Position numbers and translations under genes: made by a program
Virus record (IMG/VR): IMGVR_UViG_3300021959_006017
Location: 1 to 64,000 of that record
Length of the DNA: 64,000 nucleotides
Strand: one strand, 5' to 3'
Shown here: piece by piece, positions 43,924 to 60,302 of the stretch
How the letters are laid out: each line of letters starts with the position of its first letter
How positions within the stretch are numbered: the first letter of the stretch is position 1
The notes under the pieces: model-generated
What the model saw: the letters and a program-made list of their open reading frames with translations, nothing else
The model's database searches: none
Told to the model about the DNA's origin: nothing

Positions 43924-44143
43924 AGAAAATATCGCTGATATCTGGACACTATTTAAAGAATATGTTGACAAAAAACAAGTAGAAATAGTTGCAGAAAAGT
44001 TTATCGATCTTATGGCAGACTATGGTGTAAGTGACGAAACATTAAAAGAGTGCTTAGGAGTAGACAGTGCTCTTGATGAAGCAATACACTACTATTTAGA
44101 TGATGGTGAAGATGTTGACGAAGATGATGAATGGGATGAGTAA
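43916..44143 (+). CDS. Small acidic hypothetical protein
   Basis: Overlaps uvsX stop and uvsY start (translational coupling). Confidence 0.6.
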   Translation: MNEENIADIWTLFKEYVDKKQVEIVAEKFIDLMADYGVSDETLKECLGVDSALDEAIHYYLDDGEDVDEDDEWDE

Positions 44144-44598
44144 TGGGTTGGTATAGCGAGATATCTCGTGATGTTGGTAAAATACCAGATGCAATACAAT
44201 ATTTTGAAACTGAACTAGTACAAGCAAAAGCAGAGTGTAAACTTGTAGGTAATGTTGAAAAAAGTGCAGCCGCAATGCCAGGTATTGTTGAGCATCGATT
44301 TAATCAGCTTCAAGAGATTGAAGCAATCCTTAACTATCTAAATATCGAGCTACGTAGATTACGTAGTTCGTTTTTTAAGAAGTATCTCGAAAACTATCAA
44401 CGAGCTCTGTCTAGCCGTGACGTAGAAAAATACGTTGACGGTGAGGCAGACGTTGTTGATTACGAAAAGATTATCAACGAGTTTGCACTTATGCGTAACA
44501 AATGGTTAGGAGTCTTAAAGGCACTGGACCAGAAGCAATGGCAGATAACTAATGTTGTAAAGCTCAGAGTAGCTGGAATGGAAGATGCAACATTATGA
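44143..44598 (+). CDS. uvsY: Recombination mediator UvsY
   Basis: Helical ~150 aa with Y.E.Y.R.L..RDVEKYVDGE.D, L..LD.K.WQI.N...LR..G. Confidence 0.75.
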   Translation: MGWYSEISRDVGKIPDAIQYFETELVQAKAECKLVGNVEKSAAAMPGIVEHRFNQLQEIEAILNYLNIELRRLRSSFFKKYLENYQRALSSRDVEKYVDGEADVVDYEKIINEFALMRNKWLGVLKALDQKQWQITNVVKLRVAGMEDATL

Positions 44599-45227
44599 AC
44601 TTTTTAATAGCATGTGATCAAACCTATTATGATGACTGGGGTCATGAGCTTCTTAGAAGCATACAGTGGCACAACCCTTGGTTAAAGTTACACTGCCATA
44701 TTGTTAATCCTCAAAACAGAAAAAAAGGATTAACATATGTTGATTATACTACCGAAACAAAAGAATTTACTAGTGAGTCTAATAGGCTAGGATATTTACA
44801 AGCAGTTAGATTTTTAGCAGTTGCAGAAAAGTTTAATGATGAAGATTTTGTAATGACTACAGATGCTGATACTATCTGTACTAGACCTATTATAAAACAG
44901 CACTACCAAGAAGTATGTTCTCAAGTTAATATACTTACACATCAAAAACACGGCGGTTGGTTGTGTGGATTGGTTACATATGGTCGCGGATCTTTTAAAA
45001 AAGATTACGCAGATGCTCTCAAAAGTAAACCATTTGACAAATGGGAAGTAGGCCATGATCAACTAATATTACCAACGTTACAGGATAAGCATCGATTTAG
45101 AATATTAGATAAAAAGTGGATGAGTATTGGTAAACATCGTAACTCTAGTGCATTTTTTACACTAAAAGGTAACGATAGGAATAACAGAAACTTTAGAGCT
45201 GCATACGAATCATTTTTAATACAATGA
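44595..45227 (+). CDS. GT-A-like glycosyltransferase
   Basis: ACDQTYY, Y.QAVRF, TDADT (DxD), W..GHDQ.IL. Confidence 0.55.
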   Translation: MNFLIACDQTYYDDWGHELLRSIQWHNPWLKLHCHIVNPQNRKKGLTYVDYTTETKEFTSESNRLGYLQAVRFLAVAEKFNDEDFVMTTDADTICTRPIIKQHYQEVCSQVNILTHQKHGGWLCGLVTYGRGSFKKDYADALKSKPFDKWEVGHDQLILPTLQDKHRFRILDKKWMSIGKHRNSSAFFTLKGNDRNNRNFRAAYESFLIQ

Positions 45228-46165
45228 ATGTAATAGGTATAGAAAAAGTTTTTAGAACACATCCTTTACCCGGTTTAGACAACTTCAAAGTTGTTTCTTG
45301 GGATGATAAAGAGTCTATTAAAAACGCTGACATTTATATACAAGCAAACATAATGGAGTGCAAACATAGGAAACTACGTCCTATGTATCAATATATTAAA
45401 GATAGCGGAAAACCTTGGATAGTTGCTGAAAGTGCTGTATTCCGTAAAAATATGAAGCAACCTCCTAATCCTATGGCATATCATAGATATAGTTGGTATA
45501 GTTATTATAGAGATGAAGGCTTATACAATAACAAAAATAGGCCTAGTGACAGATGGGATCAAATACAAAGAGATCAAAATATTGAAATAAAAGATTGGCG
45601 GCTAAACTTAGACGGATTTGTAACAGTTATTATGCAACGTCCGGGCGATAGTAGTCTTAAAAATCTTTTGGCAAAACATGGTACTTACGAAAACTTTATT
45701 TCTAATACTATTAAAGAAATAAGAAAAAATACAAAAAGACCTATTAGAATACGTATGCACCCGTTGCGTCAAGATAGACAAAAAGCAATACTTGACAAAC
45801 TAAATCTCAAAGATGTTTATATAAGCGAAAACATACAAGGAGCAAAACTTCTTGAAGGCGGCGACGGACTACAACGAGATTTTGATAATGCATGGGCAGT
45901 AGTCGGATTTAACTCTAATGCATTAACTGAAAGTATTTGTGAAGGAATACCTACGTTTAGTTTGTGTCCTAGTTCAATGGCTTGGGAATGTTCAAATACA
46001 GACTTATCTCAAATAGAAAACCCTAAGTTTTTTGATAGACAACAATGGTTAAACAACCTAGGGTACTGCCAATGGAGAGAAGATGAGATTGCTCAAGGAG
46101 CACCTTATTATCATTTAATGGAAATATATAACGAAGCTAAAAGTTATAGGAAAAATGTTTTATAA
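45224..46165 (+). CDS. Capsule-synthesis (KpsC/KpsS-like) glycosyltransferase 1
   Basis: MQRPGDSSL (QxxxD), RPIRIRMHP, AVVGFNSNALTESICEGIPTF. Confidence 0.6.
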   Translation: MNVIGIEKVFRTHPLPGLDNFKVVSWDDKESIKNADIYIQANIMECKHRKLRPMYQYIKDSGKPWIVAESAVFRKNMKQPPNPMAYHRYSWYSYYRDEGLYNNKNRPSDRWDQIQRDQNIEIKDWRLNLDGFVTVIMQRPGDSSLKNLLAKHGTYENFISNTIKEIRKNTKRPIRIRMHPLRQDRQKAILDKLNLKDVYISENIQGAKLLEGGDGLQRDFDNAWAVVGFNSNALTESICEGIPTFSLCPSSMAWECSNTDLSQIENPKFFDRQQWLNNLGYCQWREDEIAQGAPYYHLMEIYNEAKSYRKNVL

Positions 46166-46721
46166 CATTTGAAAATCTTTCAGCTACTATATTTTTTGTT
46201 TCTTCATTATACATTTTTTTATAATCTTTTTCTCTAGATGTATCAGATTTAACAAATGTACGCAGTAGTTCATTATTGTAAGGTATAGGCATTTCTAAAA
46301 AAGACTCGTGTAAGTTTGTATAATCTATAAGATTATCTACTTTAATATTTCTTGCATGTGCATACATACCCCAGTCGTTTTGATCTTTTGCTCCTCTTAC
46401 AAATGCTTCAAAGCCCTTGGCAACTTTTTTAGGTTTACGTTTTTTATAATAAAAATAAGCACTAATAAGTTTATCCCAAGGATTTCTTTCTACTGCAAAC
46501 TTATAATAGGTTTCCCATTCTTTAGGATATGTATTGGCAATCCATTGCCAGCTTCTATGTCCATTTATTTCGTTTGTATTAATCCGAGGCGTACCGTCAG
46601 CTTTACTTCCTGTACAAATATCAGTTGGTCCGAGATAGTTTACAAGATATTTTTCAATACTGGATCCGGCTGTCTTTCTTGTCTTAACAAATATAAATTT
46701 ATGCTGGTGAGATATGATCAT
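46137..46721 (-). CDS. Sulfotransferase (carbohydrate sulfotransferase family 2-like)
   Basis: FIFVKTRKTAGSSI (5'-PSB) and KFAVERNPWDKLISAY (3'-PB) PAPS-binding motifs; start MIISHQHK at 46721. Confidence 0.8.
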   Translation of the reverse strand: MIISHQHKFIFVKTRKTAGSSIEKYLVNYLGPTDICTGSKADGTPRINTNEINGHRSWQWIANTYPKEWETYYKFAVERNPWDKLISAYFYYKKRKPKKVAKGFEAFVRGAKDQNDWGMYAHARNIKVDNLIDYTNLHESFLEMPIPYNNELLRTFVKSDTSREKDYKKMYNEETKNIVAERFSNVIKHFSYNF

Positions 46722-46747
46722 ATAAATATTTAACTGGAGCGAAGCAA

Positions 46748-47311
46748 ATGGTTCAAAACAAATGGTTGATGAGTTGGGAAACACCCCAACACCTTAAAAA
46801 GAAAAAAGAACTTTTTAATATTGTAGATAGTTATTTAGATTTCAAACCCAAAAGAATATTAGACATAGGGTGCGGACTTGCTAGAGAAAGTGAATACTTT
46901 CAGAAAAAGTATGGCTGTGAACTTTATTTACTAGACGGAGATTTTGGAGATACATCTAGTGTAAGAAGAGAAATAAAGTTTGGAACTGTTGATAACTTTG
47001 CCTTTTATAATAAGATAGATGATTTAAAAAAATCCTGTGATGAAAGAGGAATGAACTATGTATTTGTAAATGCAAACAATATAGATATTCCGTCAGATAT
47101 AAAGTTTGATCTTATTATAAGTAATCTTAGTTGCGGATTTCATTATCCAGCTAATACTTATAAATCACTAGTACAAAAGCATTCTTCTGAAGATACAAAA
47201 GTTATTTTTGATTTACGAAACGGTCAGGATCATCCTGACGTAGAGATATTAGAAATGGTACCTCGTGGAAGATGTAAAAAACATATAAAAGCATCTATTA
47301 GGTTTGTATAA
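46748..47311 (+). CDS. Class I SAM-dependent methyltransferase
   Basis: ILDIGCG motif I, LLDG, KFDLIIS..SCGFHYP; TATAAATA at 46721. Confidence 0.8.
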   Translation: MVQNKWLMSWETPQHLKKKKELFNIVDSYLDFKPKRILDIGCGLARESEYFQKKYGCELYLLDGDFGDTSSVRREIKFGTVDNFAFYNKIDDLKKSCDERGMNYVFVNANNIDIPSDIKFDLIISNLSCGFHYPANTYKSLVQKHSSEDTKVIFDLRNGQDHPDVEILEMVPRGRCKKHIKASIRFV

Positions 47312-47399
47312 TGGATTTAGAAACAACGTACAAAAAAACTGTGCTATTACCGTAACCATAAAAATATAATGCTAGTTAAGTACATACATAAATATCAGT

Positions 47400-48173
47400 A
47401 TGAAAGTAGTATTAGTCACAGGTGGATTTGATCCACTGCACTCAGGACATATTGAGTATTTCAAAGAAGCAAAGAAGTTAGGCGACAAACTAGTTGTTGG
47501 CGTGAATTCAGACGATTGGTTAACACGAAAAAAAGGCAGACCATTTATGACCTTTGAAGAACGTTGTGCTATTATAAAAGAACTAGAAGTAGTTGATCAG
47601 GTTATTGGATTTAACGATCTAGACAACACAGCAAACAAAGCAATCGGCCAAGTAGCAACTATGATTACAGGCGATGACATTATGATCTTTGCCAACGGCG
47701 GAGATCGAACTGATACAACAACTCCGGAATATGAAGTATACGGTAGCTATCGTTGGTGCGAGTTTGCATTTGGCGTAGGCGGCGAAAACAAAATGAACTC
47801 TAGTAGTTGGATACTAGATGAATGGAAAACACAAAAGACAGAACGTGACTGGGGATATTGGCGTGTACTAGATCATAAGCCTGAAAAAGGATATAAGGTA
47901 AAAGAACTTGTAATATATCCTGGAAAAAGTTTAAGCGATCAGAAACACTACAAAAGATCTGAACAATGGATTGTACTTGAAGGGGTAGTTAAGATGGACA
48001 CAGAATGGGACGGCAGATCCGACAGTATTCATTTACAACCTCATACATTACCATATGAAATAGGTAAAGAAGTTTGGCATAAAGCAAGCAACCCCAACGG
48101 TGAAAACGCACACATACTTGAAATACAATGGGGTGGTGTGTGTGTTGAAGAAGATATAGAAAGAAGGGATTAA
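47400..48173 (+). CDS. Cytidylyltransferase-like domain fused to mannose-6-phosphate-isomerase-type cupin
   Basis: TGGFDPLHSGH, GVNSD.WL.RKKG, FANGGDR, K.NSSSWIL; then R.WG.WRVL, KVKEL...PG.SLS.Q.H.KRSE.W, WH...N, EIQ.G...EEDI.R. Confidence 0.82.
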   Translation: MKVVLVTGGFDPLHSGHIEYFKEAKKLGDKLVVGVNSDDWLTRKKGRPFMTFEERCAIIKELEVVDQVIGFNDLDNTANKAIGQVATMITGDDIMIFANGGDRTDTTTPEYEVYGSYRWCEFAFGVGGENKMNSSSWILDEWKTQKTERDWGYWRVLDHKPEKGYKVKELVIYPGKSLSDQKHYKRSEQWIVLEGVVKMDTEWDGRSDSIHLQPHTLPYEIGKEVWHKASNPNGENAHILEIQWGGVCVEEDIERRD

Positions 48174-48847
48174 TGAAAGTATTTGTAGGATATGACACAA
48201 GAGAAGATATTGCTTATCAAGTATGTAAGCATAGTATTCTCAACAAACAACCTGACGCAGATGTGCGTCCGCTAAAACAAAAGGAACTGCGTGATGCAGG
48301 ATGGTACAAAAGACCAATAGACAAACTTGCATCAACAGAATTTACATTTACACGATTCCTTATCCCAGAACTTACTAACTTCGAAGGCTGGGCATTGTTT
48401 ATGGATTGTGATATGATCCTTACAACAGATATTAAAGAACTTTTTGATCAAGCAGACGACAAGTATGCTGTTATGTGTGTACACCATGATTACAAAGTTA
48501 GTGAAGGTACAAAGATGGATGGACAAAAGCAAACTATCTATCCACGTAAGAACTGGTCAAGTGTAATGTTGTTTAACTGTGCGCATCCTAGTAATGCTGC
48601 ACTTACAATGGACTTAGTTAATGAACCTGAAATCAATGGCGCATACTTACATCGTTTTAGTTGGTTAAAGGATGAAGAGATAGGTGAACTAGATCATACA
48701 TGGAACTATCTAGTAGGAGTATACAATGATATAGAAACTCCTAAACTTATTCATTATACAGAAGGCGGTCCTTGGTTTGAAAACTATAGGTACTGCGAGT
48801 TCCATGAACTTTGGAAAAAAGAACTACAGGAAATGATGAATGCCTAA
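48173..48847 (+). CDS. GT-A glycosyltransferase (GT8-like)
   Basis: VFVGYD.REDIAY.VC..SI, STEFTFTRF..P, FMDCDM, YPRKNWSS.MLFN, WNYLVG, HYT.GGPWF. Confidence 0.75.
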   Translation: MKVFVGYDTREDIAYQVCKHSILNKQPDADVRPLKQKELRDAGWYKRPIDKLASTEFTFTRFLIPELTNFEGWALFMDCDMILTTDIKELFDQADDKYAVMCVHHDYKVSEGTKMDGQKQTIYPRKNWSSVMLFNCAHPSNAALTMDLVNEPEINGAYLHRFSWLKDEEIGELDHTWNYLVGVYNDIETPKLIHYTEGGPWFENYRYCEFHELWKKELQEMMNA

Positions 48848-49646
48848 GTATCTCGCACTTGATAGTCTAGACACTATTGTAAAGCCTTTTGCAGAACATG
48901 TAAATGCTGAGTTTGTCGAAGGATGGAAAAATCTACACAAGTATCCATCCCACTTTCCAGTTATTTTTAGGAGTATGACACAGCGTAAAACTGTTACAGT
49001 TTGTAAAGAACAAAATAGGCCATACTTTTATATAGATACTGGATATATTGGAAATATGCAAAAACGAAAAGACTGGCATAGAATAGTACCTAGTGGAATG
49101 CAACATAACCAAGTAAACTGGGAAATGCCTTCCGATAGATTTAACAAAATTGCAGCAACAAAACCTTATCTAGCTTTTCCTGGTTGGAAGAAAAACGGAC
49201 GTAGCATATTAGTTGTAACACCGTCAGAAAAACCTTGCAAGTTTTATGGTATTAATAGAGACGAATGGCTAGCAGATACTCTTGCAAAAATAAAAGCAAA
49301 TACAGATAGACCTATTATTATTAGAGATAAAGTTAATAGAAGAGACAGAGTGGGTGCTGGAAGCATTTACAATCAAATAGATGAAGATGATATTTTTGCT
49401 GTAGTTACTTACAATAGTATTGCAGCAACAGAAGCTATAGGTTATGGTATTCCTTGTTTTACTCTTGCACCAAACGCTGCTGATCATTTTTGTGAAAAGG
49501 ATTTATCTAAAATAGAAACACCAAAATACGAAGAACCCGTTAAAGTGCATAAATGGCAGCATTGGATAGCATACTGTCAGTATCTTCCTAGAGAAATGCG
49601 AGACGGAACTGCACTAAAATATATAAAGGAGTACGGATTAAAATGA
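48840..49646 (+). CDS. Capsule-synthesis (KpsC/KpsS-like) glycosyltransferase 2
   Basis: YIDTGY, TDRPIIIRDK, AVVTYNSIAATEAIGYGIPCF; lacks the HP motif. Confidence 0.55.
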   Translation: MPKYLALDSLDTIVKPFAEHVNAEFVEGWKNLHKYPSHFPVIFRSMTQRKTVTVCKEQNRPYFYIDTGYIGNMQKRKDWHRIVPSGMQHNQVNWEMPSDRFNKIAATKPYLAFPGWKKNGRSILVVTPSEKPCKFYGINRDEWLADTLAKIKANTDRPIIIRDKVNRRDRVGAGSIYNQIDEDDIFAVVTYNSIAATEAIGYGIPCFTLAPNAADHFCEKDLSKIETPKYEEPVKVHKWQHWIAYCQYLPREMRDGTALKYIKEYGLK

Positions 49647-50578
49647 CAATAAAAGTTGCTTCTTATTTAATGGGTATACCCCCAGGTAATACAAACCCGG
49701 AAAAACCTGCTATTATTGTAAACTTTATCGAAGGTGTTTGGAAGTGCGGAGATGAAGGTACTATTGTAACTGATTATACTCCTGTAGATGCTGATGTAGC
49801 AGTAGTACAAGGATTTGTACACCCGGGTAGTAAAAACAGTCAACATTTAAATCTTAGAAAAAATGTATTCGAAAAACAGCAACGTGACGGAAAGCGTAGT
49901 GTTATTGTTGACAGTAATTTGTTTTTATTTGCTGATAAAAATAATAGTAAAAAATATTTAAGATATAGTTATGACGGTATATTTCCTAACACCGGTGAGT
50001 ATTGTAATAACAATCCTGATCCTGCACGTTGGGAAAAAATAAGAAGAGATCTTAAAATAACATTAAAGCCTTGGCGGCTTACTAAAGGAAAACACATACT
50101 AATAACTTGTCAGCGTGACGGCGGCTGGAGCATGGACGGGCAAGCTATTATGCCGTGGTTATTAAAGACAATAAAAGAAATACGCAAGCATACTGATAGG
50201 CCTGTGCGTATTAGATTCCATCCTGGTGATAAAAAGATTTTAGAACACAAAAGAGCATTAGCTCGATATCGCTTACCTGGAGTCACTGTAAGTCATTACG
50301 ATAATATTTTACAAGACTTTATTGGCTGTCATGCAGTTGTAAGTTACAACAGTAGCCCTGCAATAGCAGCAGCAATAGACGGAACACCAGTATTTGTTTT
50401 AGATCCAAATAGAAGTCAAGCAGGTGAAGTATCACACCACGACTTAGCAGATTTAGAAAACTTAAAAGAGCTTGACAGAGAGCGTTGGATACATTCAATG
50501 GCACAAATGCACTGGACATTAGACGAACTTAAAGACGGAACAGCATGGAGACATTTAAGAAAATGGGCAAAGAAATAA
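49643..50578 (+). CDS. Capsule-synthesis (KpsC/KpsS-like) glycosyltransferase 3
   Basis: LKPWR...HILITCQRDGG, TDRPVRIRFHP, AVVSYNSSPAIAAAIDGTPVF. Confidence 0.6.
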   Translation: MTIKVASYLMGIPPGNTNPEKPAIIVNFIEGVWKCGDEGTIVTDYTPVDADVAVVQGFVHPGSKNSQHLNLRKNVFEKQQRDGKRSVIVDSNLFLFADKNNSKKYLRYSYDGIFPNTGEYCNNNPDPARWEKIRRDLKITLKPWRLTKGKHILITCQRDGGWSMDGQAIMPWLLKTIKEIRKHTDRPVRIRFHPGDKKILEHKRALARYRLPGVTVSHYDNILQDFIGCHAVVSYNSSPAIAAAIDGTPVFVLDPNRSQAGEVSHHDLADLENLKELDRERWIHSMAQMHWTLDELKDGTAWRHLRKWAKK

Positions 50579-51417
50579 CAGTAGTAACTACGTTTCATCC
50601 TGAAGGCATGAAAGTATATGGACAAAGATTTATAGATAGTTTTGCTGAACGTGTAGACAAACGTATCAAACTATTAGTTTATGCTGAAGATTGCAAACCT
50701 ACTGTAGATCCATTAAATGAAAATATAACAATACTTGATGCTAAACAAGCACTGCCTAAACTAAATGCATTTAAGGAACGTTGGGGTAATGTTCCAAAAG
50801 CAAACGGTAAATGTCCTTGGCCCGAAAGACGTCCAAGAGATCATCACAAAGAGTTTAAATGGGACGCAGTAAGATTTGCTAACAAAGTATATGCAGTATT
50901 TGATGCGTGTGAACGTAGCACAGACTGGTGTGCATGGATGGATGCAGATACATTTATACACAGTGATTGGACGTATGAGCAGTTTTCTAACCTCTTGCCA
51001 AACGACTCATACCTCACAATGGTAGGTAGAGGTAAAGGATCACAAACTTGGCCAGAGTGTGGATTTTATGGTATGAATCTTAAAAACAAATCATGCCAAG
51101 AGTTTTTAGCAGAGTTTGAACGTGTGTATGAGGATGCAGAAAATGGCATCTTTACTTTAGAAGAATGGCACGACAGTTATGTCATGGGTGATATTATACA
51201 GAAGTTTAAACTGAATAAAAAAGATAATGTATACGATTATAGTTCAAGTATATATGTTAAAACTGCTAAGACAGGCGGTGGAGGACATCCACTTATTAAT
51301 AGTGAACTAGGACGTTGGATGGATCATATGAAGGGCGATCGTAAGTTCCAAGGTAAATCAAAAGCAAAAGATTTAATGGGTATAAGGCAGGAATCATATT
51401 GGCAAAATGCAGTTTAA
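50563..51417 (+). CDS. GT-A-like glycosyltransferase
   Basis: VVTTF...G...YG.RF..SF, WDAVRFANKVYA, WMDAD (DxD), ECGF, EWHDS, DH.KG.RK. Confidence 0.65.
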   Translation: MGKEITVVTTFHPEGMKVYGQRFIDSFAERVDKRIKLLVYAEDCKPTVDPLNENITILDAKQALPKLNAFKERWGNVPKANGKCPWPERRPRDHHKEFKWDAVRFANKVYAVFDACERSTDWCAWMDADTFIHSDWTYEQFSNLLPNDSYLTMVGRGKGSQTWPECGFYGMNLKNKSCQEFLAEFERVYEDAENGIFTLEEWHDSYVMGDIIQKFKLNKKDNVYDYSSSIYVKTAKTGGGGHPLINSELGRWMDHMKGDRKFQGKSKAKDLMGIRQESYWQNAV

Positions 51418-52258
51418 CTTACATACAAAGTTTGGTGCCCTCAATAGTGGCCCTGTTTTTGATGCCTTTCGTACTGGCGCTAATGCTCTCGGGCATAGTG
51501 TTGTTGTTGACGGTAATGACGGCATTGATGTTATTTGGAGCGTACTTTGGAACGGTCGCATGTCTGGAAACCGTGCTATTTGGGAAAGAAACATTTCACA
51601 ATCCAAACCGACCATCGTCCTCGAAGTCGGAGGAATATCTCGAGGATCCACTTGGAAGGTAGGATTAAATGGAATTAATAGAGATGCTTTTTTCGGTGAT
51701 GGCGGGAACGATAGTAGGCGTAGCGATCTACTTAATCTTAGATTGAAACCGTGGCGCACTGAAGGCAAATACATTCTTATATGTGGACAGCATGATAAGA
51801 GTTTACAATGGCAAGACATGCCTAGAATGAGTCAATGGGTAATGGATACTATTGATGAAATAAAAAAGCATACCGATCGTACAATAATATTTCGACCACA
51901 TCCTAGATGCACCCTACCTCATATCGAACACGAATATACTAATGTTAAAAGACAAAACCCTCGCTATATTAATGGCACTTATGACGATTTTGACATGGGC
52001 TTTGATAACATATGGGCTACTGTAAGTTATAGCTCAAACCCAGGTATACACAGTATACTCGAAGGCGTACCTGCTTTTGTAAGTCCGCACAGTCTTGCAT
52101 ACGATGCAGCAAATGATATAGACTTCCTTCACGATATAGAAAACCCAATAAGACCTGATAGACAGCAATGGCTAAACGACTATGCATGGACAGAGTTTAC
52201 TGTAGAAGAAATAGCCTCAGGATTACCACTTAAACACTTGACATCTAAGCTAGTTTAA
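51407..52258 (+). CDS. Capsule-synthesis (KpsC/KpsS-like) glycosyltransferase 4
   Basis: LKPWR...YILICGQHDKS, TDRTIIFRPHP, ATVSYSSNPGIHSILEGVPAF. Confidence 0.6.
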   Translation: MQFNLHTKFGALNSGPVFDAFRTGANALGHSVVVDGNDGIDVIWSVLWNGRMSGNRAIWERNISQSKPTIVLEVGGISRGSTWKVGLNGINRDAFFGDGGNDSRRSDLLNLRLKPWRTEGKYILICGQHDKSLQWQDMPRMSQWVMDTIDEIKKHTDRTIIFRPHPRCTLPHIEHEYTNVKRQNPRYINGTYDDFDMGFDNIWATVSYSSNPGIHSILEGVPAFVSPHSLAYDAANDIDFLHDIENPIRPDRQQWLNDYAWTEFTVEEIASGLPLKHLTSKLV

Positions 52259-52266
52259 GTTATAAT
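52238..52266 (+). promoter_or_regulatory. Sigma70 consensus promoter TTGACA-N17-TATAAT
   Basis: Perfect consensus, 6 nt before ATG 52273. Confidence 0.8.
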
Positions 52267-52272
52267 GTTTAC

Positions 52273-53460
52273 ATGATACAGACAATAGAAGACGCACTCG
52301 AAACCCTTGCCGGTCTTAAAGGCAACTACAATCTAAAGATAGAAAAGGAAGAGTTTACTATAGTGAATAGTATAGCTCGTCAAGTCTTTAGAGGTACAGC
52401 TTTAACTGATAGGCAGTATGCACTAATGAAGGACAAACTGCAAAAATATATTCCGCAGTTTGAACAAGCAGGTTTGGAAAACACACTAGTTGCTCTAGAG
52501 GAACTTAGACAGCCGCTAAGATCTATTGACAGAACTAGATATATTAAGATAGTTGATTATCCAGACGACATGCCGTATGATGCAGATGAATCTGAAAAGT
52601 ATATTGCTGTTAGGTTTCCATTTAAAAAGTCTGACATTATGCTTATAAATGATATCCCTAAACGAGATGGTTATCATCATAATAAAGGAAGTCATACACA
52701 TTATTTTGCATTAACTGAAAACTATTTGTTGGCTATTGGTGATAAGTTTTTTAATAAAGATTTTGAAATAAACAAAGTTCTTAAAGAAAGATATCAACAA
52801 ATAAAACAAATACAAAATAATGCAGAACAATATCTTCCATTTTTAGTAGATGATAAGATACAAAATATTAGCCCTAAACTTGAAAAGATAATACAAGAAG
52901 AAACGGGCTACGATCTATTAAAAATATATGATAGAAGATTTAGGTATTGTTTAGACGATATTAATATTAATGTTACTGGAAGTTCACTAGAAGAAGATAT
53001 TGCTAGTAGAAAAACTATTGAGTATCAAAGCAAACCTAGTGTACAATCTATTGATAATATTTTATATGCCTTGTATAACTTAGACAGATTTCCTATGCTA
53101 GTTGTACTAGATCACAAAGATTGTGAAACACAACTGCACGAAGTTGTAAACTTTTTTAGAGACTTGGTATCCTCTGAAGAACAAAGTGTGCTGTTTAGAG
53201 ATGAAGATACCGATAGCGGGTTTAACCAGTTGATAAAACACAGAAAACTTAATAATTGGGTTGACAAAACTACAAAAATAGTGTATATTAGTGATAATAA
53301 ACTTCCTAAAGTTTTATTAGAAACAGATTGGAGCCCAAACTGTGCATTTGCATACAACAGTAATAACAACAAAAGTGTACAGTTATATATTAAAAATAGT
53401 TGCGATTTAGTTGTGTTTAGAGAAGAGACAATAAGTCCGTTTGTGAGAATGTACAGATAA
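52273..53460 (+). CDS. Hypothetical protein upstream of uvsW
   Basis: 395-aa ORF; SIARQV..G.ALTDRQ N-terminal motif; no function recognised. Confidence 0.6.
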   Translation: MIQTIEDALETLAGLKGNYNLKIEKEEFTIVNSIARQVFRGTALTDRQYALMKDKLQKYIPQFEQAGLENTLVALEELRQPLRSIDRTRYIKIVDYPDDMPYDADESEKYIAVRFPFKKSDIMLINDIPKRDGYHHNKGSHTHYFALTENYLLAIGDKFFNKDFEINKVLKERYQQIKQIQNNAEQYLPFLVDDKIQNISPKLEKIIQEETGYDLLKIYDRRFRYCLDDININVTGSSLEEDIASRKTIEYQSKPSVQSIDNILYALYNLDRFPMLVVLDHKDCETQLHEVVNFFRDLVSSEEQSVLFRDEDTDSGFNQLIKHRKLNNWVDKTTKIVYISDNKLPKVLLETDWSPNCAFAYNSNNNKSVQLYIKNSCDLVVFREETISPFVRMYR

Positions 53461-53461
53461 T

Positions 53462-54925
53462 ATGAGTTCGTGTAAACTAATAATTGAAGACGAAGTAAAC
53501 ATTAAGCTAGAAGGACTAGAGATTGATGTGCGGCGTAAAGTTGCTAACGCATTAAAGTTTGAAGTGCCTTATGCTCGATACATGCCTCAGTATAAGCTAG
53601 GACGATGGGACGGTAAGGTTGCTTTTTTTGGTATTGGTGGCACAGGCTACGTTAATCATCTTGATACTATTGTTGCTGTTCTACAAAAAAATAACGTCCA
53701 AATAGTAGACATTGACGATCGTAGACATCCTGTAACATTAGACTTTCAACCTATTACAGAACGTTATTGGGCAGATCAAGGTGTTGTATGGCCTAAAGGA
53801 CATCCTGCAGAAGGTGAAGAAATCATTCTGCGTGACTACCAAGTAACAGCAATCAACAACTTTCTACAAAACCCACAGAGCTTGCAAGAGATTGCAACAG
53901 GAGCAGGTAAAACTATTACAACTGCTACTCTGTCACATATTAGTGAGCCGTATGGACGCAGTCTTGTTATTGTACCTAACAAATCACTTGTTACACAAAC
54001 AGAAGAAGACTATATCAATTGTGGGTTAGACGTAGGGGTGTACTTCGGCGACAGAAAAGAGTTAGGTAAGACTCACACTATCTGTACATGGCAGAGCTTG
54101 AACATTCTAGACAAGAAGTTCAAAGACGGCAGTGCAGTACTAAGCCTCGCAGAGTTCTTAGACGGTGTAAGCACTATTATTGTCGACGAAGTACACCAAG
54201 CCAAAGCAGAAGTACTAAAGAATCTGCTTACACGCAACCTACGCAATGCACCTATCCGTTGGGGACTTACTGGTACAGTACCTAAAGAGAAGTTTGAGTT
54301 CGAAAGTATTCATGCTTCGTTAGGTCCAGTAATAGGACAGATTAGTGCAAAAGAACTTCAAGATAAAGGTGTGCTATCTCAATGTCATGTTAACATTGTA
54401 CAACTTATAGACACACAAGCACATAGTGATTATCAATCAGAATTAAAATATCTAGTAACAAATAAAGATAGAATCGAATACATAGGCAAACTACTAAACA
54501 ATATAAAAAACTCAGGCAATACACTTATACTTGTAGATAGGATTTCTGCAGGAGAAATGTTACAAGAACTTATACCAGGTTCGACATTCGTAAAAGGAGA
54601 CGTTAAATTAAAAGATAGAAAGGAAGCGTATGATGAAATCAATGAAGGAACTAATCATGTGGTTGTTGCAACCTACGGTGTGGCCGCGGTGGGCATTAAC
54701 ATTCCTCGTATTTTTAATTTGGTTCTTATTGAACCCGGCAAAAGTTTTGTTAGGGTTATTCAAAGTATAGGTAGAGGCGTAAGAAAGGCAAAGGACAAAG
54801 ACTTCGTACAAATATGGGATCTTACAAGCACTTGTAAGTTTGCGAAGCGGCACCTTACTCAGCGTAAAAAGTTTTATAAGGAAGCCCAATACCCCTTCAC
54901 AATAGAAAAGGTAGATTGGCAATGA
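53462..54925 (+). CDS. uvsW: SF2 DNA helicase UvsW
   Basis: G.WDGK, LRDYQ, ATGAGKT, VDEVH, GLTGT, GINIP, QSIGRG.R. Confidence 0.9.
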   Translation: MSSCKLIIEDEVNIKLEGLEIDVRRKVANALKFEVPYARYMPQYKLGRWDGKVAFFGIGGTGYVNHLDTIVAVLQKNNVQIVDIDDRRHPVTLDFQPITERYWADQGVVWPKGHPAEGEEIILRDYQVTAINNFLQNPQSLQEIATGAGKTITTATLSHISEPYGRSLVIVPNKSLVTQTEEDYINCGLDVGVYFGDRKELGKTHTICTWQSLNILDKKFKDGSAVLSLAEFLDGVSTIIVDEVHQAKAEVLKNLLTRNLRNAPIRWGLTGTVPKEKFEFESIHASLGPVIGQISAKELQDKGVLSQCHVNIVQLIDTQAHSDYQSELKYLVTNKDRIEYIGKLLNNIKNSGNTLILVDRISAGEMLQELIPGSTFVKGDVKLKDRKEAYDEINEGTNHVVVATYGVAAVGINIPRIFNLVLIEPGKSFVRVIQSIGRGVRKAKDKDFVQIWDLTSTCKFAKRHLTQRKKFYKEAQYPFTIEKVDWQ

Positions 54926-55438: not shown

Positions 55439-55807
55439 ATGACAATGAAAGCAGGAAAGATATGGGGACAAACTGAACTAATACACGCTAATGGTGTATT
55501 AGAGTTTCACCGTATAGAGTTTAAAAAAGGATATAAATGTAGCGAGCATGAGCATCGTTATAAATGGAATGGATTCTTTGTTGAATCGGGCAAGATGATT
55601 GTTCGCGTTTGGCAAGATGCAGATCAAGAAGGGTTAGTTGATGAAACTATTCTTGAAGCTGGAGACTTCACACAGGTGAAGCCAGGAAAAATTCACCAGT
55701 TTGAAGGTTTAGAAGATGGTGTCGCTTTTGAACTTTACTGGGCTGAATTTAATCACGATGACATTGTTCGTCGTACAATAGGCACAGAAGTAAAAGGAAA
55801 AAAATAA
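55439..55807 (+). CDS. Cupin-domain protein
   Basis: GKIWG.T, CSEH.H..KWNGF.VESG, V.PG..HQF. Confidence 0.75.
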   Translation: MTMKAGKIWGQTELIHANGVLEFHRIEFKKGYKCSEHEHRYKWNGFFVESGKMIVRVWQDADQEGLVDETILEAGDFTQVKPGKIHQFEGLEDGVAFELYWAEFNHDDIVRRTIGTEVKGKK

Positions 55808-56506
55808 ATGTTTACAAAACTACTAGAAGGTGTTGACAAAACACTTGTTAGAAATCTAGTTATTTTACACACGTTAGTTATTGCGGTGTCAAATTATCTA
55901 GTTACCATTCGATTTGATTTGTTCCCAGGAGCAGATCTACCGTTGTTTGGATCATTTCCATTAGCGGCGGCAGCGTTTACGTTTCCGATCGTAGTAGTGG
56001 CAACTGACCTTACTGTAAGGATGGTTGGTAAAGAAGCAGGTAGAGCCGTTGTAGCAATGGCTATTATTCCAGCTATTGTAGCATCAGTTCTTGTGCTGTT
56101 AGCACTAGGTGATGAACATGCTTACAGAGTAGGGTTTGCATCAGGTACAGCATATGCTATCGGTACAATGCTTGACGTATATGTATTCCAACATATTAGA
56201 GAGAAGTGGAGCGAAGCATGGTGGGCAGCCCCGGCGATTTCAACTATCGTGGCTAACATCATTGACACATATTCATTCTTTTATGTAGCATTTGCAGGTT
56301 CAACAGACGCAGAAGGCAACTTAACTTGGATTGGTGAAAACTGGCACATTGTTGCACAGAACAATACACTGACTAAGGTTGTAGTTGGCTTGATTGTATT
56401 CCTGCCAGCATATGGTGTACTCCTTGCATACTTGAAAAATCGAGTAGCGCCAACACCAGTAGAAGAAGCGCCTAAGAAGCGTGGACGTAAAAAGGCCACA
56501 AAATAA
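55808..56506 (+). CDS. yhhQ: Queuosine precursor (preQ0/preQ1) transporter, VUT family
   Basis: Multi-TM; IAVSNYLV, AFTFP....ATDLTVR..G...R, R...AS..AY..G..LDV.VF, WW.AP..ST...N..DT..FF..AF. Confidence 0.85.
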   Translation: MFTKLLEGVDKTLVRNLVILHTLVIAVSNYLVTIRFDLFPGADLPLFGSFPLAAAAFTFPIVVVATDLTVRMVGKEAGRAVVAMAIIPAIVASVLVLLALGDEHAYRVGFASGTAYAIGTMLDVYVFQHIREKWSEAWWAAPAISTIVANIIDTYSFFYVAFAGSTDAEGNLTWIGENWHIVAQNNTLTKVVVGLIVFLPAYGVLLAYLKNRVAPTPVEEAPKKRGRKKATK

Positions 56507-56763
56507 TGGGTGAGCTTCTACCAGGAGAAGCATTGATATACGAGCGTAGCAATGGAGTTGTCTACGCTCGTTATCGCGACAAGCCAGAAATAGAACGATG
56601 GGTAATAGGAGGAGATCCAGGTGCAGTGGCTAGAGCACAAGGTCGATTATGCGACTATAGTGAATGGCAAAAACTGTGTGATATGTGTGTAGAACATCCT
56701 ACGCTAATGAAACTTATGGACCAACTTGTAACAACATATTATATTATGAAGGACGACAAATGA
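56506..56763 (+). CDS. Hypothetical protein
   Basis: 85 aa, coupled to both neighbours. Confidence 0.55.
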   Translation: MGELLPGEALIYERSNGVVYARYRDKPEIERWVIGGDPGAVARAQGRLCDYSEWQKLCDMCVEHPTLMKLMDQLVTTYYIMKDDK

Positions 56764-57086
56764 AATATGAACAATGGGATATAGGAGGAGAAGTTGTAAA
56801 AGCAGACGATCGCTATGTTGTAAAAGACAATACACTTCTTAACAACTTAATAGTAAGTAGTACAAACTTAAAACCCGGGAAATCAACAACAGGCCACAAG
56901 CATGAAGGTCAAGAAGAAGTATACATTTTTGTAAAAGGCCATGGAGTAATGCAGATAGACGATGAACGATTTGATGTAAATGAAGGCGATACAGTCTTAA
57001 TACAAGACGGAGTCTTTCATCGTGTGTATGCAGGTACAACAGGTTGTTATTTTATTTGTGTATTTGACGGAAGGAGAACCCATTGA
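56760..57086 (+). CDS. Cupin-domain protein
   Basis: L.PG.ST.GH.H.GQEEVY.F..G.G.M.ID...V..GD.V.I..G.FH.V. Confidence 0.8.
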   Translation: MKYEQWDIGGEVVKADDRYVVKDNTLLNNLIVSSTNLKPGKSTTGHKHEGQEEVYIFVKGHGVMQIDDERFDVNEGDTVLIQDGVFHRVYAGTTGCYFICVFDGRRTH

Positions 57087-57856
57087 GAATTATTGCAGGA
57101 CCGTGCCAACATGAAAGTTTAGAAAAAAGTTTAGAAATCGCAAAAGAATGTAAACGAGTTTGTCACAAACTCGGCATTGAATATTATTTTAAAGCAAGCT
57201 ATGATAAAGCCAATCGCACAAACATAAAGGGCGAAAGAGGTAAAGGTATTGGTTGCTTAGAAGATTTTAAAACTTTAAAAGAAGAAATACCTGGTCTTAA
57301 AACATTAACAGATGTACATGACAGTATGCAAGTTAATGTTATTCAATATCATTATAACGACTGTGTTGATGTACTACAGATACCTGCCTTTCTTTGTCGT
57401 CAAACAGATTTGATTAAAACAGCAGTTGATACAGGCAAGATAGTTAATATTAAAAAAGGACAGTTCTTAGCACCTTGGGACGTAGCAGGTATCCTTTCAA
57501 AAACAGAAGGTGCTAAAGAAGTATGGATTACTGAAAGGGGAACTAGCTTTGGATATAATACTTTGGTCGTTGATTTCACTGGCATGCAGTATATGCTTGA
57601 TACCTATAATGTTCCTATTGTTTTTGATGTTACCCACTCGGTTCAACGCCCGGGAGGAAATGGCAGTAGTAGCGGCGGCAATAGGGGGTATGTCCCTGGC
57701 CTATCTCGCGCTGCATCTGCAATGGGTATAACAGACTTCTTCTTAGAAGTACACGCTGACCCGGATAATGCACCCAGTGACGGTGCTAATATGTTACGCT
57801 TAGAAGATTTTGAAAGGACAGTAGATGACATCCACCGCTATTCTTATACCGGCTAG
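57083..57856 (+). CDS. kdsA: KDO-8-phosphate synthase
   Basis: IAGPC..ES, FKASYDKANRT, TDVH, LQIPAFLCRQTDL, NIKKGQFLAP, TERGTSFGY..LVVD, FDVTHSVQ.PGG.G..SGG.R, F.EVH..P..APSDG; TTG start after AAGGAG. Confidence 0.95.
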   Translation: MRIIAGPCQHESLEKSLEIAKECKRVCHKLGIEYYFKASYDKANRTNIKGERGKGIGCLEDFKTLKEEIPGLKTLTDVHDSMQVNVIQYHYNDCVDVLQIPAFLCRQTDLIKTAVDTGKIVNIKKGQFLAPWDVAGILSKTEGAKEVWITERGTSFGYNTLVVDFTGMQYMLDTYNVPIVFDVTHSVQRPGGNGSSSGGNRGYVPGLSRAASAMGITDFFLEVHADPDNAPSDGANMLRLEDFERTVDDIHRYSYTG

Positions 57857-58517
57857 ATATGCAAGCACACGCCTGCATGGAAAGCCTATGCTTGAGTTAG
57901 ATGGCATACCTATGATAAAGCGTGTGTATGACGCTTGTATAGCGTCTAACCTGCCAACATTTGTGCTTACTGACCACCAAGACATATACAACTATATGGG
58001 TGCCGGCAAGTGCATTATGGACACAGCAGATTATGAAAACGGCACAGAAAGATGTGCAGGTGCAGTAGCAAGCCGTGTGTTTGATGACTTTGATCAGTTT
58101 ATAAATGTACAAGGTGATATGCCAGATGTAACAGTTAACATGATTCATAAGTGCATAGTTAGTCTTAATCAATACGAAGTAAGTACAGTGTACACCGAAA
58201 TGCCTGAAGAAGAACAAAACAAGCCAAGTAGTGTAAAGATGGTTAGAGCAGGAGATCAGGCTCTGTGGTTTGGTAGAGGTATGACAGGCTACGGTGATTG
58301 GCACTTAGGTGTTTACGGTTATCGCAAGACTGCACTACAAGCATATCCGCATCTACGTATAGAACAAGAAGAACGTGTAGAAAAACTTGAACAGTTGCGT
58401 TGGCTAAAAAGTGGTTGGCAAATAGGTTGTTTGAGTGTATACTTTAATGGTGTAGAGATTAATACTGAACACGATGTTAACTTATGGAAGTACAAGCATG
58501 CCAAACAAGCACATTGA
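57825..58517 (+). CDS. kdsB: CMP-KDO synthetase
   Basis: IPARYASTRL.GKP, GTERC, INVQGD.P, H.GVYGYR, E..EKLEQLR.L. Confidence 0.92.
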   Translation: MTSTAILIPARYASTRLHGKPMLELDGIPMIKRVYDACIASNLPTFVLTDHQDIYNYMGAGKCIMDTADYENGTERCAGAVASRVFDDFDQFINVQGDMPDVTVNMIHKCIVSLNQYEVSTVYTEMPEEEQNKPSSVKMVRAGDQALWFGRGMTGYGDWHLGVYGYRKTALQAYPHLRIEQEERVEKLEQLRWLKSGWQIGCLSVYFNGVEINTEHDVNLWKYKHAKQAH

Positions 58518-58962: not shown

Positions 58963-59638
58963 TAAGCCATATGTATGTGAATACTGCGGTAGTGGTTATG
59001 TAAGAGAAAAAACTCTTGCTGCTCATATGTGTGAACCAAAGCGTAGAGCATTACAAAAAGATGAGAAACGTGTAAGGCACGGGTTTTATGCATTTCAGAG
59101 GTTCTACAAACTGAGTGCAGGCACAAAGAAGGAAAAAACATATGAAGACTTTTGTAAATCACAGTACTATAATGCTTTCGTCAAGTTTGGTTCGTTTATC
59201 AATAATGTGCGTCCTTTATATCCTGAGCGTTATATTGATCATGTCGTTACTAGTGGAGTAAAGCTCGATCACTGGTGCAAAGAAGAAATGTACGAAAAAT
59301 ATGCACTTGAACTTATTCTTAAAGAAGACGTAACAACTGCTTTAGAAAGAAGTGTAAAAAACATGATGGAATGGGCAGATGAAAATAATAGTGTATGGAA
59401 TCATTATTTCTTCTATGTAAGTTTGAACAGAGCTGTATGGCATATTAAAGACGGAAAAGTAAGTCCTTGGCTCATACTTAACTGCAAGAGCGGAAAAGAG
59501 ATGCTAAGTAAATTTAACGATGAACAACTAGAACTTGTGTATCATGTGATTAATCCAGAGCATTGGGCAATGCGATTTAATCGTAATCCAAGTGATGTTG
59601 CACTTGTTCGTGATATTGTAAAGGAAAGCAATCTATGA
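58937..59638 (+). CDS. Hypothetical protein with N-terminal zinc finger
   Basis: YVCEYCG..Y.RE.TL.AH.C. Confidence 0.6.
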   Translation: MASKTSNSDKPYVCEYCGSGYVREKTLAAHMCEPKRRALQKDEKRVRHGFYAFQRFYKLSAGTKKEKTYEDFCKSQYYNAFVKFGSFINNVRPLYPERYIDHVVTSGVKLDHWCKEEMYEKYALELILKEDVTTALERSVKNMMEWADENNSVWNHYFFYVSLNRAVWHIKDGKVSPWLILNCKSGKEMLSKFNDEQLELVYHVINPEHWAMRFNRNPSDVALVRDIVKESNL

Positions 59639-60087: not shown

Positions 60088-60302
60088 TGGAAGAAAAAGT
60101 ATCAGCAAAGCGCCATTTAGCAAAAGCAGTTACATGGCGTATTATAGCAAGTATTACCACAGCACTTATTGCTTGGACGTTCGGATTGCCTCCAAAGGCT
60201 GTCGGAGCAGTATTCATAGCAGACTTAATCATTAAGTTTGTTTTGTATTATGCTCACGAACGTATGTGGTACAAACATATTAAATATGGAGTTAAAGAAT
60301 GA
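60087..60302 (+). CDS. DUF2061-like small membrane protein
   Basis: R.LAKAVTWR..AS..T, K..LYY.HER.W....G. Confidence 0.75.
   Translation: MEEKVSAKRHLAKAVTWRIIASITTALIAWTFGLPPKAVGAVFIADLIIKFVLYYAHERMWYKHIKYGVKE

Follow-up and report, generated by a model that had tools for sequence, protein, structure and literature searches.

What could a lytic phage make with four related glycosyltransferase-like proteins encoded among its replication genes? The question is raised by the first 64 kb (hereafter, the window) of the 236,751-bp IMG/VR virus record IMGVR_UViG_3300021959_006017, estimated to be 67% complete, where an island of glycan-related genes containing four paralogues (p1–p4) lies between uvsY and uvsW. 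The window encodes gp32, UvsX, UvsY and UvsW; its UvsW is closest (50–55% identity) to those of jumbo phages such as Sinorhizobium phage Phosso, Agrobacterium phage Atu_ph07, Pseudomonas phage PA5oct and Vibrio phage 2.275.O. Near-identical or identical proteins were also found on marine metagenome contigs of up to 343–357 kb. The source is an uncultured marine jumbo T4-like phage.

A preliminary description of the locus had placed the island between uvsY and uvsW, which is confirmed by the UvsY-like and helicase-domain matches of the flanking genes (Table 1). [quoted passage not shown] All four ORFs exist, with the quoted motifs, and exactly four family copies are present in the whole record. 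Judged by their sequences, p1–p4 are true paralogues, well beyond chance: the pairwise BLASTP E-values are 3.5e-35 (p1–p3), 1e-24 (p3–p4), 4e-22 (p1–p4), 2e-17 (p1–p2), 8e-14 (p2–p3) and 4e-12 (p2–p4). In a four-way alignment covering their full length, p2–p4 are 27–31% identical to p1, with 22 invariant columns. An NS...E...G.P.F block and a C-terminal W...E...G block are common to the four proteins, and none of them has a membrane anchor like that of KpsC.

Fold and Family of the Paralogues

AlphaFold2 models of p1 and p3, built with an alignment of 86 representatives, reached a predicted local distance difference test score (pLDDT) of 94.8 and 96.2, respectively. Among the best 25 Foldseek matches in the PDB, there were exclusively KpsC, WbbB and KrkA chains, each with a probability of 1.00. 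The best matches among the Swiss-Prot AlphaFold models were FixF, LipA, KpsC, LpsZ, LipB and KpsS, which are capsule/K-antigen proteins of the Capsule_synth family. The models have a modified GT-B fold, and their similarity to KpsC is global, extending over both domains. A structural comparison with KpsC had been named as a check of the preliminary description, and in it the models matched KpsC-type enzymes above all else in the PDB. As far as the models go, the match of p1 and p3 to these enzymes is specific. To our knowledge, the modified GT-B fold has so far been seen only in retaining ulosonic-acid transferases, namely KpsC/KpsS (GT107), WbbB (GT99) and KrkA (GT140).

A profile built from the four sequences gave only a chance-level CapG match among the PDB sequences and was set aside. 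KpsC surfaced only with a 90-sequence family profile, for which the best PDB match was KpsC 6mgd of Thermosulfurimonas (E 0.077); the WbbB chains gave E 0.96–2.2, and KrkA was not detected by this profile. In hhalign, the family profile was aligned to the C-terminal module of Escherichia coli CFT073 KpsC (KpsC-C) with a probability of 85% (E 5.9e-6) and to the N-terminal module (KpsC-N) with a probability of 79% (E 1.6e-5). Nine of the 90 family representatives touched PF05159 (best E 9.4e-5), and 18 touched DUF6716.

The four-sequence profile retrieved 845 metagenome proteins from the indexed collection, none of which is named, and the nearest Atlas clusters were 94–100% viral. An exhaustive search with E ≤ 0.001 put p1–p4 in a large and still unnamed family, mostly of viruses, that comprises no fewer than 4,595 clusters (50% identity); 3,136 of these clusters had E ≤ 1e-10. 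With the curated GT107/PF05159 model, p1–p4 stay below the threshold, and by such sequence criteria the family is not a GT107 member. It has the fold alone in common with the WbbB-type (GT99) and KrkA-type (GT140) enzymes. It is most aptly seen as a new branch, dominated by phages, of the superfamily of retaining Kdo transferases, in which some subfamilies carry nucleophile variants.

Some family members (P0141, P0142, P0149, P0249, P0258 and P0268) are 550–770 amino acids (aa) long and comprise either a pair of family modules or an additional domain, a layout reminiscent of the dual-module KpsC. The Atlas also includes viral fusions of the KpsC-like fold with GT8 domains.

Active-Site Types

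Three profile alignments placed p1 on the KpsC-N and KpsC-C motifs in one common register. Residue E69 of p1 falls on Glu66 of KpsC-N, the general base, in the alignments; Q138 and D142 correspond to Gln156 and Asp160 of the QxxxD motif, the latter being the nucleophile; R177-x-H179-P180 corresponds to the Lys192-x-His194-Pro195 motif for binding of cytidine monophosphate (CMP), and S231...G241.P243 to the second nucleotide-binding loop of KpsC. The established roles in this motif set (PMC10148158, PMC12887879) are those of covalent nucleophile (Asp), binding of the Kdo carboxylate (Gln), action on the CMP phosphate (the His of (K/R)xHP) and activation of the acceptor (Glu). The HP histidine is residue 194 when counted on CFT073 KpsC; it is printed as 'His94' in PMC10148158. 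Glu66 of KpsC-N, which belongs to an EDGF motif, and its equivalent in KpsC-C were aligned to E69 by hhalign; Asp67 and Trp42, located near Glu66 in KpsC, are not reproduced.

The preliminary description had ascribed the complete QxxxD and HP pair to the first ORF and the loss of HP to the second. Indeed, p1 contains Q138-R-P-G-D142 and R-M-H179-P180, and p2 has R-D-K-V where the others have R-x-H-P. The (K/R)xHP motif is present in p1 (R-M-H-P), p3 (R-F-H-P) and p4 (R-P-H-P), aligned to K-V-H-P/K-P-H-P of KpsC, p2 being the exception. The QxxxD motif is found in p1 alone; p3 and p4 have Gly and Ser, respectively, four residues after the Gln (Q+4). The motifs around this position are QxxGD-S/T-S in the p1 clade, QRxGGWS in the p3 clade and QxxxSxQW in the p4 clade, and the N-domain acid is Glu in p1 and p4 and Asp in p2 and p3. 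On these motifs, each of the four copies has an active site of its own type, and each type is conserved within its clade.

The signature columns E69, Q138, D142, R177, H179, P180 and S231 were counted among 267 family members. The p1 type (EQD-RHP-S) accounted for 164 of the 267, many being p1 orthologues, followed by the p4 type (EQS-RHP-S, 24), the p3 type (DQG-RHP-S, 23) and the p2 type (DP-/RK(T/V/P)/S, 9). In a family tree rooted with the two KpsC modules, Asp was found in 27/27 members of the p1 clade (support of 95 in the Shimodaira–Hasegawa-like approximate likelihood ratio test, SH-aLRT), Ser at Q+4 in 16/18 members of the p4 clade (SH-aLRT 100) and Gly in 17/21 members of the p3 clade (SH-aLRT 98); a second Gly clade was also present (SH-aLRT 99). 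The Asp-bearing lineages are at the base of the tree, and the Ser and Gly clades are derived. Asp is likely to be ancestral at the nucleophile position, and it is called only likely because the root lies on a long branch.

We considered p2 as a decayed pseudo-enzyme and rejected this, because its replacement motifs are invariant: the loops Y-I-D-T-G-Y, V-T-P-S-x-K-P-C and R-(D/N)-K do not vary across 121 orthologues (55–87% identity). The same class, with P-S/P-S/T replacing Q...D and R-x-K replacing R-x-H, recurs in both copies of Pelagibacter phage Mosig, in gp171 of Caulobacter phage CcrSC and in the two copies adjoining kdsB on the metagenome contig L050 (see below). The ratio of non-synonymous to synonymous substitution rates (dN/dS) of p2, 0.07–0.24, is as low as those of its neighbours, though the figure is a rough one, dS being saturated.

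Putative Kdo Donor Supply

The preliminary description had located kdsAB about 5 kb downstream of the island. This is borne out: the two genes begin 4.8 kb past the island end, and kdsA scores above its cut-off (Table 1). The kdsB-like gene is the only CTP_transf_3 gene in the record, neither NeuB nor a second cytidylyltransferase was found in the 237 kb, and kdsA/kdsB form the only CMP-sugar pathway found there. As judged from gene content, the phage encodes only the committed and activating steps of the Kdo pathway, because homologues of SIS-type (sugar isomerase) KdsD and of KdsC were not found in the record. Two small cupin proteins (55439-55807 and 56685-57086, both +) are encoded on either side of a Vut_1 transporter gene, the second abutting kdsA; a cupin-type sugar-phosphate isomerase in place of KdsD is conceivable.

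In every related contig reaching so far (L015, L016, L023, L027 and G001), kdsA or kdsAB was found downstream of the island. The strongest context evidence for a CMP-Kdo donor comes from L050, an independent contig of a distant phage, in which UvsX- and UvsW-like genes flank an island with four family copies, GT61 and KdsB. This KdsB scores 196.7 bits against a cut-off of 193 and only 24 bits with PseF, and the start of its gene, inside the uvsX–uvsW island, overlaps the stop of the last family copy. The kdsA matches of 'Acinetobacter phage MD-2021a' (L063) were discounted as bacterial chromosome sequence (pyrG-kdsA-eno). Co-occurrence with kdsB, which had been suggested as a check of the preliminary description, was seen within the clade and in L050 and did not hold in isolated phages. 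Phages without kdsB do not contradict a Kdo donor, because Gram-negative hosts supply CMP-Kdo. From these data, we infer CMP-Kdo as the donor.

Gene Content and Layout of the Island

The features of the locus are listed in Table 1.

Table 1. Genes of the island, its flanks and the Kdo pathway (window positions).
Feature	Position	Strand	Size and basis
uvsY, left flank	44143-44598	+	PHROG 231 UvsY-like recombination mediator, E 1.6e-16
g210, probable GT-A (GT8-like) glycosyltransferase	44595-45227	+	210 aa; invariant D-A-D, Atlas matches
p1, KpsC-like	45224-46165	+	313 aa; full motif set E69, Q138xxxD142, R177-x-H179-P180, S231
Sulfotransferase	46137-46784	-	PF03567 Sulfotransfer_2, 37.4 bits vs 22-bit cut-off; PHROG 3347, E 1.7e-9
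Probable S-adenosylmethionine-dependent methyltransferase	46748-47311	+	Methyltransf_23/Methyltransf_25, 23-24 bits vs 27-bit cut-off
HIGH-motif nucleotidyltransferase + phosphomannose isomerase (PMI)-type cupin fusion	47400-48173	+	PF01467, 61 bits; PF01050, 58 bits
GT8 (GT-A) glycosyltransferase	48173-48847	+	PF01501, 27.6 bits vs 24.3 cut-off; PHROG 28018, E 2.8e-54
p2	48840-49646	+	268 aa; D66, T127-P-S-x-K-P-C133, R162-D-K164; without Q, Asp, HP
p3, KpsC-like	49643-50578	+	311 aa; R-F-H-P, Q-R-D-G-G-W-S, N-domain acid Asp
g290, probable GT-A nucleotide-diphospho-sugar transferase	50545-51417	+	290 aa; invariant D-A-D, Atlas matches
p4, KpsC-like	51407-52258	+	283 aa; R-P-H-P, Q-H-D-K-S, N-domain acid Glu
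uvsW, right flank	53462-54925		ResIII, Helicase_C, weak UvsW_N match
kdsA (Kdo-8-phosphate synthase)	57083-57856	+	NF003543, 319 bits vs 242-bit cut-off; PF00793, E 1.4e-50
kdsB-like CMP-Kdo synthetase	57825-58517	+	PF02348, 88.7 bits; best NCBIfam matches all KdsB models, 162 vs 193-bit cut-off

The uvsY stop overlaps the start of g210. Two runs of overlapping or abutting genes, one from uvsY to p1 and the other from the nucleotidyltransferase gene to p4, are suggestive of co-transcription. At the right edge of the island, a sigma-70 consensus promoter matching at 12/12 positions (TTGACA, 17 nt, TATAAT; 52238-52266, +) overlaps the end of p4 and lies directly upstream of g395, a 395-aa gene preceding uvsW; the sigma-70 scan as a whole was at chance level. 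This promoter fits a transcription boundary at 52258, taken as the right edge. g395 (52273-53460) was rejected as an island member, having no glycan-related signal and its own consensus promoter. The T4 late-promoter motif TATAAATA was not enriched in the window (5 occurrences vs 8.5 expected by chance) and so gave no clue to the timing of expression.

The preliminary description had the Kdo product extended by three GT-A enzymes. One of these assignments, GT8 at 48173-48847, is secure on its profile matches, scoring above the cut-off; g210 and g290 hold less firmly. For g210, there was no Pfam, PHROG or NCBIfam match, and hhalign against the island GT8 was weak (probability 4%). In an Atlas feature search, viral GT8/Nucleotid_trans clusters matched it with a score of 0.96; its nearest cluster has a model with template modelling (TM) scores of 0.77–0.81 to GT8 clusters, and D90 and D92 were invariant in 8 orthologues. 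For g290, Pfam gave GT2 at E 0.086 only, and the Atlas gave 0.99 to viral nucleotide-diphospho-sugar transferase clusters and 0.96 to GT8/Nucleotid_trans, with 171–174 shared features; D133 and D135 were invariant in the orthologues. Profile methods did not confirm the GT-A fold of either protein: no match came out of the PDB profile search, and hhalign stayed at probabilities of 4–20%. The Atlas matches of both include viral fusions with Capsule_synth, GT29 sialyltransferase and MptE/Maf-like domains. In one relative (L010:9731-10603), tblastn found a g290 orthologue with two in-match stop codons, which may be a broken copy.

The proposed sulfation and methylation fared differently: the sulfotransferase is above its cut-off, though on the minus strand, and the methyltransferase is below the curated cut-offs, with a PHROG 22502 match (E 2.8e-6) and a weak match to TIGR04371, a sugar O-methyltransferase family. 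A plus-strand ORF at 46356-46733 is spurious, the real sulfotransferase lying on the minus strand. Met22 (46721) is the probable translation start of the latter, since residue 22 is where the Pfam match begins. This start leaves a 26-bp gap to the divergent methyltransferase start, and the only T4 late-promoter-like TATAAATA site within 40–64 kb is located in this gap (46721-46748). The sulfotransferase gene is also on the minus strand in the relatives L006, L007, L008 and L018 and is missing from many others; the presence of the methyltransferase gene is likewise variable.

The nucleotidyltransferase-cupin fusion matched RfaE domain II (73 bits) and TagD-type (56 bits) models, both below the cut-offs, and is kept in all relatives reaching that point. 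Based on its domains, it probably activates a second sugar or a polyol phosphate.

Three further groups of genes were noted on the plus strand downstream of uvsW. The Vut_1/YhhQ-type queuosine-precursor (preQ0/preQ1) transporter mentioned above (55808-56506; NF008406, E 5e-44; TIGR00697, 96 bits, over the cut-off) lies between uvsW and kdsA and may point to phage use of 7-deazaguanine. Three genes make up a cluster at 59635-60712: one for an adenylylsulfate (APS) kinase-like P-loop kinase (59635-60087), a hydrophobic ORF of 73 aa (60081-60302) and one for a small HIGH-motif nucleotidyltransferase (60299-60712). The kinase and the nucleotidyltransferase match two halves of the single PHROG 10255 ('kinase'), and together the three genes might form a minimal set for sulfate activation that supplies the sulfotransferase. 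A peptide deformylase (60714-61211; PF01327, E 4.6e-38) is encoded downstream of the Kdo and kinase cluster. Elsewhere in the record, there are genes for a 685-aa membrane CHASE2-adenylate/guanylate cyclase (G000:C1:133242-135299) and a Bax1-I/YccA-type membrane protein (184867-185550).

The Island in Relatives and Other Genomes

About 30 IMG/VR contigs have kept the island in the same place, between uvsY and uvsW. The gene order in these relatives is uvsY, GT-A-like gene(s), p1, nucleotidyltransferase-cupin, GT8, p2, p3, g290, p4, g395 and uvsW; some of them have extra copies or an inverted g290, and the sulfotransferase and methyltransferase genes occur in only some. UvsX, UvsY and UvsW are 85–96% identical among the relatives (UvsY, 87–96%) vs 30–86% for the island proteins. 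Conserved yet fast-evolving, the island has an identity pattern typical of genes at the host/environment interface.

Family copies were also found in isolated phages. Pelagibacter phage Mosig carries an analogous set of two methyltransferase genes, two glycosyltransferase genes, a sulfotransferase gene and two family copies, Mosig_00185 and Mosig_00187. In Caulobacter phage CcrSC, the family copies gp170 and gp171 follow the tail-fibre genes and precede an FkbM methyltransferase gene and a lysozyme gene, and in the podovirus MW202713 the copy is near genes for a TibC-like glycosyltransferase, a methyltransferase and terminase. Bacterial homologues (Bremerella cremea and a marine alphaproteobacterial single-cell genome) adjoin polysaccharide pyruvyl transferase or GT8 and a tetratricopeptide repeat (TPR) protein; around them there is only a generic glycan neighbourhood, with no kps or lipopolysaccharide (LPS) locus. 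Several 'bacterial' matches proved to be phage contigs binned into metagenome-assembled genomes (MAGs): L043 and L044 (a 'Neomarinimicrobiota' MAG, 335 kb and 153 kb) and L050 (a 60-kb contig of a 'Rickettsiales' MAG) are T4-like phage sequence with the island.

Proposed Pathway and Alternatives

Based on the above results, we suggest with moderate confidence that the island is an assembly line of soluble proteins for an acidic, probably sulfated Kdo-containing glycan. Phage KdsA and KdsB would raise the CMP-β-Kdo pool. Then, p1 would transfer Kdo from CMP-Kdo onto Asp142, with His179 aiding CMP departure and Gln138 holding the Kdo carboxylate, and would pass it on to a hydroxyl of the acceptor that Glu69 has activated, forming a β-Kdo linkage. 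By its motifs, p1 is a putative retaining β-Kdo transferase acting via an Asp142–Kdo adduct. p3 and p4 most likely use a CMP-ulosonate donor but, to judge from the aligned residues, could not form a covalent intermediate, because they have Gly or Ser at the nucleophile position; the simplest alternative would be direct attack by the acceptor, with inversion. p2 would be a working protein, either an enzyme or a binding protein, possibly with another nucleotide-activated donor, e.g., the product of the nucleotidyltransferase-cupin fusion. GT8 and the two GT-A-like proteins would add neutral sugars, and the sulfotransferase and methyltransferase, in phages where they are present, would further modify the product.

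A bolder version of this pathway is possible, albeit unlikely. In it, the p3 and p4 types would be natural counterparts of the 'glycosynthases' of the laboratory, inverting enzymes that arose from a retaining, double-displacement Kdo transferase by loss of the nucleophile and form α-linked Kdo; they would join p1 and the Lys-type p2 in producing a mixed-linkage sulfated Kdo glycan on the virion or the infected cell. Such a switch of mechanism is speculation by analogy, but it is chemically plausible, because glycosidase nucleophile mutants to Gly or Ser make the best glycosynthases. We know of no such class of glycan described for any virus of bacteria. Direct displacement by p3 and p4, if real, would make them inverting ulosonic-acid transferases of a new kind.

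As to the acceptor, we give about an even chance to a host envelope glycolipid or LPS-type carrier, a somewhat smaller one to a phage virion protein and a slight one to DNA. The position of the family genes in the structural module of CcrSC and the podovirus hints at a cytoplasmic target such as virion proteins. Alternatively, a lipid carrier may be the site at which host machinery takes over from the phage.

The claim that four β-Kdo transferases make oligo-Kdo can be kept in part. The fold, the p1 motif register and the nearby kdsAB genes agree with it; the missing nucleophile of p2–p4, the lack of a Capsule_synth model match and a kdsB link that is not general do not. Several observations also weigh against our own proposal. 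Three of the four paralogues are without the defining nucleophile. None of p1–p4 had a Pfam match at E ≤ 0.1 or, except for a weak TIGR04396 match of p3, any NCBIfam or PHROG match; PF05159 found nothing in the genome at E ≤ 1, and the hhalign probabilities to the KpsC modules (79–85%) do not exceed 95%. GT118 KpsS1, a homologue in the superfamily, transfers pseudaminic acid and not Kdo (PMC12887879). uvsW and five other genes separate kdsAB from the island, and KdsD and KdsC are missing from the record. In CcrSC, Mosig and the podovirus MW202713, family members occur without a CTP_transf_3 gene; conversely, kdsA occurs without a family member in Synechococcus phage S-SCSM2R and in the uncultured phage record LR756500. 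Finally, no exporter, flippase or lipid-carrier-priming enzyme was found among the multi-pass membrane proteins of the record (about 67% complete); these are the Vut_1 transporter, DUF6580, the CHASE2-cyclase, Bax1-I and unknowns, none of the ABC-2/export type.

Some of these observations would be expected if the paralogues transferred a non-Kdo sugar (pseudaminic, legionaminic or sialic-type) from a CMP-ulosonate, or used another host-supplied donor, with kdsAB separately sustaining host LPS synthesis. The location of kdsAB outside the island and beyond uvsW, the uneven pairing of family and Kdo genes in isolated phages, and the pseudaminic-acid transferase in the superfamily are consistent with this, as are the (K/R)xHP motif, which is common to sialyltransferases, and the weak match of p3 to TIGR04396, a surface-carbohydrate family. 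However, the record has neither a NeuB-type synthase nor a second cytidylyltransferase, and its sole CMP-sugar enzyme is KdsB-like. In L050, where kdsB overlaps a family copy within the island, KdsB is clearly set apart from PseF by score; the best structural matches are all Kdo enzymes, and the CMP-Kdo of Gram-negative hosts explains the phages without kdsB. Taken together, we regard a non-Kdo donor as quite improbable, and CMP-Kdo is retained.

It is very doubtful that p1 is the sole enzyme, with p2, p3 and p4 serving without catalysis to organise the GT-A enzymes as scaffolds, as chaperones or by binding carbohydrate. The three proteins are without a nucleophile absolutely conserved in all characterised retaining Kdo transferases, p2 is also without Q and HP, and the tight gene packing, with overlapping stops and starts, would suit a complex. 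Against this, the substitute motifs Gly-Trp-Ser, Ser-x-Gln-Trp and Thr-Pro-Ser-x-Lys-Pro-Cys are conserved and not drifting in old, well-supported clades, p3 and p4 retain Gln and the CMP-binding R-x-H-P, and Mosig has p2-class copies only.

Hypermodification of phage DNA, with sugars placed on a modified base against host restriction as by the T-even glucosyltransferases, was rejected as highly improbable, its support being limited to gene position: the island is in the recombination/replication module and apparently co-transcribed with uvsY (overlapping genes), a queuosine-precursor transporter gene is nearby, and the T4 α- and β-glucosyltransferases have GT-B folds, but the only thymidylate-synthase-family gene scores as a true ThyA (332 bits; no hydroxymethylase search beyond that), the gene set (several known or probable GT-A proteins, sulfotransferase, Kdo pathway) is of the polysaccharide/glycoconjugate type, the family is near tail-fibre, terminase or capsid genes in CcrSC and MW202713, bacterial homologues adjoin polysaccharide pyruvyl transferase or GT8, and no ulosonic acid is known to us on DNA.

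Comparison with Known Systems

The retaining Kdo transferases (GT99, GT107, GT118 and GT140) are a small, recently understood group with an unusual covalent mechanism, and their origin has been described as unclear. With the present family, they gain a very large unnamed sister family living mostly in phages, and its clade-wide natural replacements of the nucleophile offer a ready-made experiment on the evolution of glycosyltransferase stereochemical mechanism.

The closest system is KpsC/KpsS (GT107, PF05159 Capsule_synth), which makes the poly-Kdo linker of group 2/3 capsules. p1 has QxxxD and (K/R)xHP in the same register, with its E69 aligned to the Glu base; several modules or copies are encoded per locus (KpsC-N, KpsC-C and KpsS there, p1–p4 here), with specificities that differ there and would differ here; and a CMP-Kdo synthetase gene is nearby, as is kpsU in kps loci. 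The differences are also substantial. Sequence identity to KpsC is 12–13%, and PF05159 is blind to p1–p4. The phage proteins consist of a single module (268–313 aa) and have no C-terminal membrane anchor region; the nucleophile Asp is missing from three of the four copies. The group 2/3 capsule system works with the KpsMT ABC transporter, KpsE/KpsD and a lipid acceptor, phosphatidylglycerol. No KpsMTED exporter genes were found in the record (about 67% complete), and the island is located in the replication module of a lytic phage, not in a capsule locus.

The N-terminal domain of WbbB (GT99, O-antigen capping) and KrkA (GT140, K13 capsule) had no significant sequence match (WbbB, E 0.96); unlike the phage proteins, both are domains of larger multi-module proteins. 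The HP-motif inverting sialyltransferases (GT38, GT52, GT80 and others) have the (K/R)xHP CMP-binding motif in common with the family. Their single displacement with an acidic base is the mechanism proposed here for p3 and p4.

Phage Kdo-pathway genes accompanied by many glycosyltransferases and a sulfotransferase are likewise found in S-SCSM2R (KdsA, KdsB and 13 glycosyltransferases) and in an environmental T4-like genome (KdsA, NeuA and WaaG). Host-surface remodelling has been proposed for such marine-phage gene sets (PMC12801897; PMC5332604), in which KpsC-type transferases were not identified, and S-SCSM2R is without a family member. In contrast, the island described here is fixed between uvsY and uvsW in another, jumbo-phage lineage. 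It is a fast-evolving island for probable glycan synthesis that comes with its own putative supply of CMP-Kdo; the lineage carrying it is uncultured, marine and abundant.

For a virion target, a precedent of Kdo on protein Ser/Thr is reported (bioRxiv 10.1101/2020.06.03.131540). O-Glycosylation of proteins by Maf enzymes, with Kdo or nonulosonic acids, is also comparable, in that viral clusters fuse g290-like GT-A domains with MptE/Maf-like domains, although the Maf/MptE-like catalytic fold differs from the KpsC-like fold of the paralogues. Mycobacteriophages glycosylate their capsid and tail proteins with transferases of their own. Since cultured phages such as Pelagibacter phage Mosig and Caulobacter phage CcrSC carry the family, the target of phage glycosylation can be tested at the bench here as well.

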